From: Trichosphaerium sp. ATCC 40318
Lineage: Eukaryota > Protista > Tubulinea
DNA length: 64,000 nt
NCBI GenBank assembly: GCA_038496445.1
Contig: JALMLS010000216.1
Coordinates: 186,001 to 250,000 of the forward strand
Direction of reading: 5' to 3'
In this document: positions 35,977 to 44,688 of the stretch, piece by piece
How positions within the stretch are numbered: the stretch's first letter is position 1
Layout of the letters: each line of letters opens with the position of its first letter
The notes under the pieces: generated by a model
The model's input: only the letters and a program-made list of their open reading frames with translations
Told to the model about the DNA's origin: nothing
The model's database searches: none
Made by a program: the position numbers and the translations under genes

Positions 35977-38642
<2,666 letters not shown>

Positions 38643-39795: not shown

Positions 39796-42700
39796 TTACG
39801 CAAATAAGCGATGGCTTGCTGATTTCATTTGTATAATGTTCTTAGCTGCAGAATCATCCTTCTGTTCAACAGCTGCATCTTCTAATATCTCTTCTTGGAC
39901 TTGCGCTTGACGCATAAATCCATCTAGTTTCTCAGCTTGTTTGATAAAGTTAATATACTGCCTTTGGTGTGATTTTGAGAACATAGCACGTTGGAGAAGA
40001 CGTTGATGAGATATGAGATTAACACGTGCTTCTTTATATTCTCCAAACTGTGCCATTTCAGCTGATTGTTGAACAGCTTTCATAGCAACAACAGAAGCAG
40101 CAATATTTTTCTCAGCTTCTTCAATTTCATGTGTAGTAGGTAGTGATCTTGTTTCAACACGAAGTACCTTAGCTCCATTCGGTTGAATGTATTCTATCTA
40201 AAGTAAACAATCCATCAGTATGTCACTAAAAAGGAGCTGCAATTTTGAGCCCAGACAACTAACGTACTTGAACTTGGAAGTTAAGTGACTTTGGTTCCTT
40301 AAAGAACTCTATTGGTTTGAACGAGAAAGTAACATCAGTGTCTTCGTTGACATTACCCAACTCTCTAACAGATTTACATTCGCCGGAATCTGCAAATTCA
40401 AGGCTCTTATGACTAACAACGGTACATGTAAGACCAGTAGCAATAACAGGTTTACTCATAATCTTTGCTACCTGAAAAAAAAAACCCAAACGTCAATAAA
40501 AACTTGATGAAGTTCTACAGCAAACAACGTCGTACCTGTTGGTTTAGATCTAATGGATTTACTATATCTACAACACCAGCAGTCTTATCGGCAAGCACAC
40601 CAACAGTTTCAACTGATGTATCATCACCACGGATACTAATAAAGTTGATAGTGGTTCCATTTGATTTGGCAATATCGGCCATCTTCTCATAGTCAATTTT
40701 AGCTTTTTTCTTTGATGACTCTGAAGATCCTATCTGTCCGACACCAAAGTTGGCAAGACCATCAGTACATACCATTACTAAATATAACACGTGAGTGGAG
40801 TATAACAGAAAGCAAATGAACAGGAAAGAAAAAAAGGACGCACTCTTTGATCCAGGGCTAGAGGAAGCCATACCAATGGCGTAACATACAGCTGGTCCAA
40901 GAGCAGTTGATCCTTCTTCAGAAATGCGATCAACTACATTTGTGAGTTGGTCAGCGCATTCTGATGCTGGCTTAAGTTTGTGCGTTTTGAAGTATTCTTC
41001 TCCCTGTGAGCTAATGAGACTAATGTGACTTCAAAGAAAAGAAAAAAGTGGAATCTACTTACACCTTTTACAAGCGTGTTTATCCTTGCATAGTTTCTTC
41101 GATTTATGTAGTCTGGTTTTCTAGATGTACCATCACCATAAACAGCGATGCGAGTACCGAAAGTGATAAGAACTGGTCTTGAGTTTGGAAATCTGTACTT
41201 CATTTGCTGCAACTGAATATGTACAGCTGAAAAAAAGGGTGAGCGAGAAAGAACAAACGTGACATGTTACATACCTGCTTGGATACACTGCATGCGTGAT
41301 ACGTAGTCCGAGTTTTTACTCTTCTTGGCAATAGCCTCCGGTAAGTTTGTTCCTCCCTCTACTTTCGTAGTAACTGTCATAGATCCTGAAATATCAACAC
41401 AAAAAATAACAAGTGCTTCATCCATAAGATTCTTATCAACCTTCCCACTTCCTTCAGATACAGCAGGGTTCAATACATATTCAACAGTCTGTTGATTAGG
41501 CTCCTCCCCTTCTTCTAACATTATCTCATTCTCAGTATCACAGAAGGAGCACTTCCAGGTAAAGGTAGCTACAAAAAAAAAGTTAAAATAAAAATAACTT
41601 GTTCTTTCCTTTTTCAACGTACTGTCATCGATTTTAGTAAGCTTTGAGCTGTGATTCATGATAGCAGGACATTCGTTGCAATATGTAGGTTCTCCAGTCA
41701 TCTCAACAGCTTTCCCTTTACTCTTATCAAGTGCTTGCATTGGCACGTGAATGATATTTGTAGTACTAAGCTCATGCTTGATTGGTTCTCTGTCAGCTAA
41801 ATAAAACTTAGCGAAATAAGGCAAAACCCAAAAAACACTGAGATTAAGGATTAACCTAGTAACGGACAATAGTCCAATCACCATGTTCTTCAACAAAAAA
41901 AAAAAAATTCATATATGAACGTACCTTGCGGTATAAGAGTCTTTGCCCAAATGATCTCAGTTCGTTCAGCTTCTTTGTTATTAGCTACTTGTTGAGACTT
42001 CTCAGGTAGTCCGACAACCTTAGGGTTTGTGGAAGCTCCGCCAGTCCATTGTCCTCTAGAAAATACTTCTTAGAAACAATCCTTCGACAAAGAAAAAGTG
42101 CAGCGTACGATGTTCCCCAAGGGCACTTTGTATCAATGATACTTGGTCCATACTCTTCATATTCTTCTTTGCTTATAGCCATATCTAAAAACGTTGGTAG
42201 TGATCCTAGAATTGAACCACCAATCCAAGCAGAATACTTTCTCTCTGGTGGTGCTATAACGTTTGCTTTTGTTATATTATTCGGAACCATGGCAGTGATA
42301 TCTTTTTTCAACCTTTCTGCGTATCCAGGGAACATAGTATTTCCGCCAGCAAGCACAATATTAGCAAACAAATCCTACAAAAAAGTTCCAAAATCAGAAA
42401 AATAGCTGAAACCTTTCTGTAACTTGTGCACTTAACGTACCCTTCTAAGATCAACGTCTATAGACCAAATAGAGTTAAATACAAGGTCAGCAACACCAGC
42501 ACTTTCCATACCGATAAACGAAGGCTATGGTGGTTGTTTAATGGTGAAAACAGGCAAAAGAAGAAAAAGTAGTCGTACTGCAAACATTGCTTCTGCACAA
42601 CGGAAACGTTCATTGGCAATAGTAATGATTTGTCCATCAGGTAGTTCATATCGTTTTTCCAAAGCAGAAGAAGAAGAACACTTTCTCATTTCCTCTTCAA

Positions 42701-44474
42701 AATCCAAAGAAACGTAGCATAGTTTTTCTAAAGTTTATATTAGAAATCTGATTGTTTTTGTTCTACCAAAAAACCTCCTAACCTTTAATGTCTTTAATAA
42801 TATCTCTCTCACTTGTTGTTGTGAAAGAATATCCACGTTCAGTAAGGATCTTCATTAGGTAGTCTGTAAGATTACCACCAGCAATATCAAGGCGTCTTAT
42901 ACCATGCATAATAGGAAATCCTTGCTGAAGAAAACTTTAGCACTAAAAACGCCCAATAACTTCGAACAACGTACATAAACTGGAACAACATTTGTGACAC
43001 CATCACCAGAATCTAACACGACACCAGTAGTCCTTCCAGTTTGAAATAACGCAAGAACGCTTGACATTGGTTGGTAATAAGCTGGAACATTAAATGACTC
43101 AAACATAATCTAAAAGAACAGTATTAATAAATCACTTCTTTGCTACTAGTTTCTTATTCTATTTATACCTGCGTAGCTTTCCGCCTGTTTGCTAAAGAAG
43201 TGAGAGGACATTCTGTAGATATTACAGGATGTTCCTCTGGAGCAACACGCAATTCATTGTAAAAAGTATGATGCCACAATTTTTCCATGTCATCCCAATT
43301 TGTTACTATACCGTGTTCTACTGGGTATTTCATTGTCAAGATACCTCTCTTAGCTCGAGCTTCATCACCTACATAACAGTCTTTTTGACCCATACCAACC
43401 TAAGTTTCAACCATTACAAAACAGCAACTTTTCAGAAAGAAAAAAAAAAAGGCAACTAAAGATTACCATAACACCTCTATGTCTGGGGCGTCCCACAATT
43501 GATGGCAAAACAGCACAAGGAGCATCATCCCCGGAAAATCCAGCCTTCATCATCCCAGATGAGTTATCTATAACAACAGTCTCACCCACATCATTATCAG
43601 TGGACAAAGCCAAAGCGTTTTTTACTTTTGGCTGAAACAGAGCTGGTACTGCAGATGGAGCTACTGAAGGTCTGAAAGTATGAAATATCATTAACAAGAT
43701 ATCACAGTTGATGTTAACACGTACGCAGATACTTTGGCAAGTTCATCTTGTCCTGTGGGGTTATTTTGTTCTTCCTCTTTTTTCCTTAATTCAGCTGATC
43801 TTTTCTCTTCTTCTTCAGCCATCTTACGTCTTTGTTCACGTAGTTTTGCTTCTGCTTTAACACGCCTTTGTTGCTCTTGTTTTACGCGCTTCTTTGACAA
43901 GGCATCGTATGTTGAAGCTTTTCCTTTCTAAAAATAGTTATTGCCTTGTTTTGGTACAACGCTCTCGTTGTAAGTGTTTCTACCTGAAATCTAGGCTGCA
44001 GACGCCTTGCTGATGAGAAAACGCCCAAATGCGATGCTTCCGCGTCATTGTGCTGTGCTGCTTTACCGCTTGCCTGCACTGAGCGTTAGAATGTTTTTTG
44101 ACTCGCTTGATTTGTACCTTTGCTTGTTCGTGGCCCATTCGCACCAACTCTTGTATAAACGATTTGTCAAACGAGCTTTCACCCATTTCAGCAGCTTCTG
44201 CCCAAAGCTAAACGATTATGTTGAGTATTAACAACAGGCAGACTAAACGCTTACCTTGGCTTGCTCTTGAGCGCAGGCGGCTAGCCCGTCTTCTATTTCA
44301 TCTGCACCATTTGTTAACCGCTAGAACACGTTTCGAGCAATCTTACCTTGATAAATCTCTTCTTCGGGCTCTTCCTATAGTAAGAAAAGGTAGAGCGAAC
44401 CATTTGATTACTATTTCACAGCTTTTGGGTACCTCTGGGATGTATACTATTTCAGAAGCAAATTTTAAGCTCAT
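39796..44474 (-). CDS. Actin-domain / Sec23-type zinc finger / vWA fusion protein (CPRas1-like scaffold)
   Basis: Continuous frame after splicing: [14 protein letters not shown]..coiled coil..[16 protein letters not shown] (actin ~43585-42121)..KCPWGTSGQWTGG linker..[54 protein letters not shown]. Confidence 0.85.
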
Positions 44475-44688
44475 TGCGTTGTTGGTTATTACAATTAATT
44501 GCTCTCGTAAACGATTCAACAAAACTGTGACAAAAAAAGTCGTTCAAAGTAAAGAAAACACATGGGAATTTCTCAGCTTTGTTTAACACCATTCTTGATA
44601 TCGTAGAGATTAAGATCAGATTGGTATCGTCTAAAGTTCAAATCACAATAAGAGTGCAGCTTCTTCACTCATCAAAATGTACATTTAT

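Follow-up and report, generated by a model that had tools for sequence, protein, structure and literature searches.

A Trichosphaerium member of a conserved protein family joining an actin domain to a Sec23/24-like zinc-finger and vWA module

Structure of the actin-fusion gene

The window analysed here is a stretch of 64,000 nucleotides from Trichosphaerium sp. ATCC 40318 (assembly GCA_038496445.1, contig JALMLS010000216.1, positions 186,001 to 250,000), and all coordinates below are those of the window. The minus strand from 44474 to 39796 corresponds to one gene, with 21 exons, 20 introns and an uninterrupted frame of 1,160 codons followed by a stop codon (TAA at 39798-39796). We have very little doubt that its product belongs to a conserved family for which we found no published description, and that it consists of an N-terminal module (N-module), a coiled coil, an actin domain, a linker, a zinc ribbon, a von Willebrand factor A (vWA) domain with a metal ion-dependent adhesion site (MIDAS), a beta-sandwich and a helical domain. 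With the same assurance, the C-terminal half is assigned to a Sec23/24-type core lacking the gelsolin domain and homologous to the scaffold of the proteins with a circularly permuted Ras domain (cpRAS-vWA). An earlier note on this DNA had proposed a single gene with actin placed between an N-terminal region and a Sec23-type zinc-finger/vWA module, and this same fusion was recovered in complete transcriptome open reading frames (ORFs) of relatives and in one intronless ORF.

The exons occupy positions 44474-44433, 44374-44347, 44301-44255, 44207-44118, 44073-43984, 43927-43725 and 43671-43467 (exons 1-7), 43399-43169, 43109-42975, 42924-42783, 42727-42579, 42524-42441, 42374-42109 and 42055-41925 (exons 8-14), and 41796-41623, 41568-41275, 41226-41063, 41003-40844, 40777-40536, 40471-40268 and 40197-39796 (exons 15-21), all on the minus strand. 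The whole coding region (39796..44474) aligns end to end with a protein from Pyxidicula, hereafter referred to as P0198 (residues 3-1159 with residues 1-1167 of P0198, 50% identity), and similar alignments were obtained with about a dozen other proteins. All 20 introns are of the GT-AG type, with lengths of 44-128 nt and donors that are mostly GTACG or GTAAG. An 18-exon model starting at 44186 was rejected as too short, since full-length relatives have about 45 more N-terminal residues. These residues led to three further short 5' exons, with the ATG of the first at 44474, the start coordinate already given in the earlier note. The encoded protein keeps 84 of the 85 family-invariant residues, and therefore looks functional as far as its sequence can tell; it also keeps 112 of the 131 nearly invariant residues.

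The passage from actin to the C-terminal half was found to be as the earlier note had read it. There is no stop codon at the normal end of actin, where a proline stands in place of F375 and the frame continues (PWGTS...). Intron 13 (42056..42108, minus strand, 53 nt), located just past the actin C-terminus, opens with the donor GTACGC, closes with the acceptor TAG and is spliced out in frame (TC|A), and the 128-nt intron within the linker (41797-41924, minus strand) is also canonical (GT...AG) and in frame. The GC|A splice predicted upstream of actin was borne out as well, with the donor GT at 43724-43723. Retention of the 53-nt intron would bring the frame to a stop at 41985 (ORF 41985-42371). 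The putative isoform ending at this position cannot, however, be a conserved feature across the family, because one relative lacks an intron at that place.

Distribution of the family

A phmmer search with the zinc-finger/MIDAS exons against 1.84 billion representatives yielded 538 matches, including a 1,114-residue transcript ORF from Paulinella chromatophora with an identical layout. The use of this Paulinella protein as a query returned about 30 more full-length proteins combining Actin with zf-Sec23/Sec23_trunk/VWA_2. The layout is shared by more than 35 proteins from Amoebozoa, Paulinella, one dinoflagellate and metagenomes. The carriers include Pyxidicula operculata and Copromyxa protea (both as complete Trinity ORFs), Paulinella micropora, Mastigella eilhardi, Mastigamoeba balamuthi (annotated as 'putative actin'), Pelomyxa schiedti ('actin 11'), Balamuthia mandrillaris ('actin'), the dinoflagellate Biecheleria cincta and many metagenome and Logan contigs. 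An identical protein was not found in the protein collections searched, in which the best match was 50% identical.

The earlier note had asked for a search for this architecture across eukaryotes. The layout turned out not to be rare, with dozens of database proteins automatically named 'actin', but full-text literature searches, including the cpRAS paper, a COPII (coat protein complex II) evolution paper and a review of actin evolution, retrieved no published description of an actin-vWA or actin-Sec23-like fusion.

Colinearity from end to end extends to complete transcriptome ORFs of four genera (Pyxidicula, Copromyxa, Paulinella and Mastigella) and to gene models of three others (Mastigamoeba, Balamuthia and Pelomyxa). 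In one further relative, P0235 (GCA_040384145.1, JAWVHD010003418.1), the fusion is encoded by a single intronless ORF of 3,603 nt (L001:3001-6603), and it is therefore made there without splicing. These sequences bear directly on the idea that the fusion is an artefact of the gene model, with separate actin-like and zinc-finger/vWA genes lying head to tail, or with a main product ending at 41985. Retention of the 53-nt intron would indeed give this stop. Nevertheless, the actin exon has no stop at its normal end, canonical splice sites hold the frame through the linker, and the linker and both halves are colinear with the complete transcriptome ORFs of several species and with the intronless ORF. 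Moreover, the N-module, actin and C-terminal module (C-module) have been inherited together. An open frame over 21 exons, colinear relatives at E = 0 and the 84 of 85 invariant residues place a single-gene fusion far beyond chance on sequence grounds, and we give the artefact explanation next to no credence.

Two relatives deserve a separate comment. The P0235 gene adjoins a LIM-domain gene and a BAR-RhoGEF-RhoGAP gene, both actin-related. The Pelomyxa schiedti protein 'actin 11' (P0246) starts at actin and carries an N-module at its own C-terminus (residues 1023-1098); it probably corresponds to two tandem family genes merged by annotation.

Pfam searches over 32 relatives identified Actin in all 32, VWA_2 in 29, Sec23_trunk in 27, WW in 12, Sec23_BS in nine, zf-Sec23_Sec24 in seven and UBA in none. 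In addition to the 12 WW-bearing members, in which WW lies before or just after actin, extra domains are carried by P0281, P0282, P0283, P0264 and P0210. Where a U-box occurs, it separates the beta-sandwich from the helical domain; a Deltex C-terminal domain is found between actin and the zinc finger, and one member has a profilin domain at its C-terminal end. Such additions hint at a link between the family and both ubiquitin ligation and actin-monomer binding.

The presence of U-box, Deltex C-terminal or WW domains in some members, together with the RING finger of Naegleria CPRas (PMC2430557), would fit a reading in which the actin domain is an integrated decoy shown to pathogen effectors or to a quality-control system, with the vWA module and the E3-ligase domains of relatives reporting or disposing of the modified bait. 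However, the protein encoded by this gene has no ligase domain, R177, the classic toxin target, is kept in only 12 of the 32 relatives, and the family is old, single-copy-like across several lineages and not fast-evolving. We therefore consider a decoy role very unlikely.

The Sec23/24-like C-terminal half and its Ras-bearing relatives

The C-terminal half follows a linker (amino acids (aa) 567-618; 41786..42122, minus strand) that holds the intron at 41797-41924 and is predicted to be disordered, then helical. The distance from the actin C-terminus to the first zinc-finger cysteine is 87 residues, and not the ~45 estimated in the earlier note. An N-terminal strand and a four-cysteine zinc ribbon come next (41516..41785, minus strand), with the CxxC..CxxC arrangement that had been proposed (CNEC at 41680-41669 and CSFC at 41551-41540). 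The Pfam zf-Sec23_Sec24 match is weak here (E 3.8e-4, exon pair 41794-41276) and reaches 2.1e-9 in relatives; the four cysteines are invariant or nearly so in the family. The vWA/Sec23-trunk domain (40454..41488, minus strand) has the intact MIDAS described in the earlier note, with DISGS at 41395-41381, the threonine in GSTALGP at 40913-40893 and TDG at 40769-40758, and the D, S, S, T and D residues of this site are invariant in the 32 family members and in 99 scaffold relatives. A beta-sandwich (aa 968-1047), a helical domain (aa 1052-1152) and the C-terminus (together 39799..40447, minus strand) complete the Sec23/24-like core.

Structures were predicted on the Pyxidicula relative P0198, which is 52% identical to the protein studied here. 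The AlphaFold2 (AF2) model of P0198:630-1178, built with a 99-sequence alignment, had a mean predicted local distance difference test score (pLDDT) of 94.3 and a predicted template modelling score (pTM) of 0.91. In a Foldseek comparison of this model with the PDB, the top 46 matches were all Sec23/Sec24 chains (E down to 4.5e-23; template modelling score by query, TMq, 0.56-0.66), including 1m2v_A, 5vng_B and 3eg9_A at E about 1e-22, and were followed by the bacterial vWA protein 4fx5 and the archaeal ArnAB. The model covers about half of each Sec23/24 target (score by target, TMt, 0.39-0.51). The gelsolin-like C-terminal domain is absent, as the model ends in helices after the beta-sandwich. 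An hmmsearch of the PDB with a profile of the C-terminal half also retrieved Sec24A (E 1.8e-16). Chains of the Toxoplasma preconoidal ring P2 named Sec23/Sec24 (PDB 9ya0 GA, GB, GC, GF and GH) were among the best structural matches of the C-module; they represent another non-COPII use of this fold, at a site of actin assembly.

In members of the phmmer set that have the scaffold at residues 250-350, Pfam Ras is matched by two permuted stretches. A protein from Dictyostelium purpureum and the Branchiostoma 'circularly permutated Ras protein 1-like' are among these members, and the earlier suggestion that the C-terminal module is shared with CPRas1-type proteins was thus corroborated. Pfam detected no Ras domain in the exons of the gene or in the 32 relatives. 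This zinc finger and VWA/Sec23-trunk half, along with relatives lacking cpRAS, is described in the cpRAS paper, which makes no mention of actin (PMC2430557).

In an unrooted tree of 100 C-modules (quick IQ-TREE analysis, LG+C20), all 35 actin-fused rows fell into one clade, together with one truncated fragment, with strong support from the Shimodaira-Hasegawa-like approximate likelihood ratio test (SH-aLRT 99). Within this clade, the C-module studied here groups with the Pyxidicula and Copromyxa proteins. The cpRAS clade (SH-aLRT 97) was located on the other side of the tree, among scaffold-only proteins. A small third group, P0075, P0076 and P0064, has the zinc-finger/vWA scaffold and a Ras domain that is not permuted (one continuous Pfam Ras match, 1-160), and is placed apart from the cpRAS clade. 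The separation of the actin, cpRAS and non-permuted Ras groups implies at least three separate fusions between the scaffold and a nucleotide-binding domain. The notion of a scaffold with a swappable front domain, put forward in the earlier note, is strengthened by this third group, but no recent swap inside the cpRAS clade is apparent: this tree places the actin-fused proteins in a separate, old lineage, whose scaffold shares homology with that of the cpRAS-vWA proteins.

The N-terminal module and the coiled coil

About 195 residues lie ahead of actin, rather than the ~150 assumed in the earlier note. The first 108 of them form a family-specific N-module (aa 1-108; 43901..44474, minus strand), conserved in 26 aligned relatives. 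In this protein, the module contains an acidic stretch, [14 protein letters not shown]...LWAEAA, followed by FIQELV and RLQPRFQKG...YD. The corresponding motifs in the 26 aligned relatives are an acidic segment with ...DG(I/L)A..A.EQA..WA, then F(I/V).EL, and then RLQPR(F/Y).KG....YD. Among 286 fetched proteins, a hidden Markov model (HMM) of the N-module matched actin-fused proteins only. The module itself matched no Pfam family in the exons of the gene or in 32 relatives, and a language-model search for look-alikes returned only RWD clusters, with a score of 0.76 that is below the useful level.

The degenerate UBA domain suspected in this region was not upheld by Pfam. The UBA profile gave no match in the exons of the gene at E up to 0.1, or in any of the 32 relatives at E up to 0.01, and the UBA identity of the stretch IQELVRMGH, which lies within the family-specific N-module, was rejected for want of profile support.

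The N-module is followed by a predicted long helix or coiled coil (aa about 102-166; 43727..43921, minus strand), with a charged, heptad-like sequence. In the full-length AF2 model of P0198 (pLDDT 79, pTM 0.59), residues 1-66 are ordered (pLDDT 66-92) and residues 104-157 are modelled as one helix. The D-loop of actin and the post-actin linker are not ordered in this model; in the linker, residues 563-592 have a pLDDT below 50 and are followed by a helix (592-627).

The actin domain

The actin domain (aa 197-566; 42123..43583, minus strand) is complete and is spread over seven exons. Pfam Actin (PF00022) was matched by single exons (E 2.8e-31 and 4.2e-20), and the first and last actin exons align with residues 2-44 and 292-374 of solved actin structures. 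In the relative P0198, positions 5-409 of the 410 positions of the Pfam Actin profile were matched (E 2.8e-131). The actin motifs quoted in the earlier note ([53 protein letters not shown] and [14 protein letters not shown]) were all found on the minus strand. The domain has 69% identity to a nematode actin over 376 columns. It is preceded by 196 residues and followed by 594 more beyond P375, and is not, therefore, a stand-alone actin of ~375 residues.

Two catalytic residues have been lost in this domain, Q137 being replaced with serine and H161 with asparagine. Among the 32 relatives, Q137 is kept in five, H161 in 17 and D154 in four. The nucleotide-site residues D11, S14, G15, K18, D154, G156, D157, K213, E214, G301/302 and K336 are kept here, and the changes at this site are G13 to S, S303 to N and Y306 to F. 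The P2 loop has decayed in most relatives. The W-loop is also altered in this actin, to VYQGFPIM. The residues H40, M44, G46, M47, K61-L65, T202, E205 and E241-G245 are invariant or nearly so in the 32 relatives, with small variation on the pointed face (I or V at I64; L242 in 31 of 32).

The two faces of the domain have not been conserved to the same extent. The mean fraction of canonical residues at pointed-face contacts was 0.87 in the 32 fused relatives and 0.90 in 18 ordinary actins, whereas at barbed-face contacts it was 0.72 in the fused relatives versus 0.92 in the ordinary actins. The corresponding values were 0.57 and 0.93 for the nucleotide site and 0.68 and 0.86 for all other positions. 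The difference between the pointed and barbed faces in the fused relatives was significant (p 7e-6), and ordinary actins had no difference between faces. The actin studied here has the canonical residue at 31 of 37 pointed-face positions versus 27 of 52 barbed-face positions.

In a tree of actin domains without amoebozoan ordinary actins or an actin-related protein (Arp) outgroup, one step separated fused from ordinary actins (support 86), a result only consistent with a single origin of the fused actins.

The loss of the catalytic residues and the decay of the P2 loop in most relatives could also be accommodated if the actin domain did not polymerise and had a structural or regulatory role, with the N-module or the long helix holding it in cis and the protein remaining off filaments, for example as a nucleotide-state-dependent switch before the Sec23/24-like adaptor. 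Actin and Arp4 have such a place in chromatin remodellers, and a switch would parallel the cpRAS or Ras of the sister families and the Sar1 that works beside Sec23. A switch role for the front domain is suggested by the fusion of the same scaffold to permuted and ordinary Ras in other clades. In addition, the N-module, which is ordered in the full-length model, occurs only together with actin, and the free C-terminus of actin is blocked. However, the D-loop residues, which are disordered in monomers and serve mainly for actin-actin contact, are invariant, the pointed face is conserved at the level of ordinary actins, and conservation is lowest at the nucleotide site, on which a switch would depend. 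We regard such a regulatory module as unlikely, although it has to be taken seriously.

A possible function in docking on actin filaments

We tentatively prefer the possibility, which stops short of being probable, that the actin domain is a handle that docks on other actin subunits, and that it thereby fastens a MIDAS-bearing Sec23/24-like adaptor to filaments. The D-loop residues serve mainly for insertion into the cleft of the next subunit, and since they stay invariant while the ATPase site decays, docking of the domain on another actin's barbed face seems to have been retained. A further subunit may be accepted poorly, to judge from the relaxed barbed face and the occupied C-terminus.

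The actin domain would bind nucleotide but would hardly hydrolyse it, because Q137 is replaced with S and H161 with N. Its pointed face (D-loop, 61-65, 202-205 and 241-245) would attach it to the barbed face of a further actin subunit, whether at a filament's barbed end or through co-polymerisation. With its own barbed face relaxed and its C-terminus running into the linker, it may then end or mark the filament. The Sec23/24-like module would thereby be fastened to actin, and the metal site of the MIDAS would hold an acidic ligand on a partner, which may be a membrane protein, a cargo or a component of the ubiquitin system.

Several considerations weigh against docking on filaments. The residue sets of the two actin faces, on which the comparison of their conservation depends, were picked from general knowledge of F-actin structures and not by a tool. 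Polymerisation is often disturbed when actin is fused at its C-terminus, and co-polymerisation is not assured. According to the structural model, the ordered N-module could itself occupy an actin surface in cis. The profilin domain of one relative suggests that the barbed face of that protein is still used.

A bolder extension of docking, which we consider improbable, is that the family represents a new class of filament end-anchor, in which a hydrolysis-dead terminal actin would add to barbed ends through its pointed face, block or mark them, and couple them directly to a COPII-like adaptor for cargo or membranes. The actin, cpRAS and Ras fusions would then make up one ancient set of Sec23/24-like adaptors, in which every member has a nucleotide-binding partner of its own built in, just as Sec23 is paired with Sar1.

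To our knowledge, very few natural proteins contain a whole near-conventional actin, and outside this family we found none that joins actin to a coat-type adaptor. The family is conserved over distant protist lineages. The actin surface for sitting on another subunit appears to have been selectively kept, with the ATPase site and the opposite face drifting, and this provides a testable idea of the way in which the ends of filaments might be secured to cargo or membranes in cells. The long-uncharacterised cpRAS-vWA scaffold would also gain a second experimental handle, an easier one, through standard actin assays.

Other open reading frames

Two ORFs of 118 and 122 residues (42049-42405 and 44218-44586, plus strand) lie antisense to exons of the gene and are probably mechanical only. 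A 131-residue ORF (35977-36372, plus strand) reads like the N-terminus of glucose-6-phosphate isomerase, and its gene would converge on the 3' end of the actin-fusion gene.

Comparison with known systems

The cpRAS-VWA proteins (Dictyostelium CPRas1 type; Elias and Novotny 2008, PMC2430557) have the same four-cysteine zinc finger, VWA/Sec23-trunk with MIDAS, beta-sandwich and helical part, with about 30% identity over roughly 500 residues, and likewise have a nucleotide-binding domain in front and a poorly conserved linker. However, the domain in front is a permuted Ras in these proteins and a full actin in the family described here, the 108-residue N-module and the coiled coil belong to the actin-fused family, and the C-modules fall into separate clades (SH-aLRT 99 for the actin-fused clade versus 97 for cpRAS). 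Sec23/Sec24, the inner coat of COPII, likewise have a zinc finger, trunk (vWA fold), beta-sandwich and helical domain in this order. Unlike Sec23/Sec24, the actin family lacks the gelsolin-like C-terminal domain and has actin fused in front, and no more than 12-16% of the sequence is identical; the MIDAS of the actin family is intact, whereas its Asp is aligned with a Q of Sec24A in the profile alignment. The likeness described here is one of fold and sequence.

Filactin also has a near-conventional actin inside a much larger protein of Amoebozoa. Judging from its description, it is set apart by the C-terminal location of its actin, after an unrelated N-terminal extension, whereas the actin described here is internal and is followed by the Sec23/24-like vWA module. 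With conventional actin, the domain shares a fold that is complete from residue 5 to C374, with the phosphate loops, adenine pocket, D-loop and hydrophobic plug (FIGM) kept. It differs in the substitutions of Q137 (S) and H161 (N), in the W-loop VYQGFPIM, in the replacement of F375, beyond which the chain continues, and in the presence of about 195 extra residues in front and about 595 behind.

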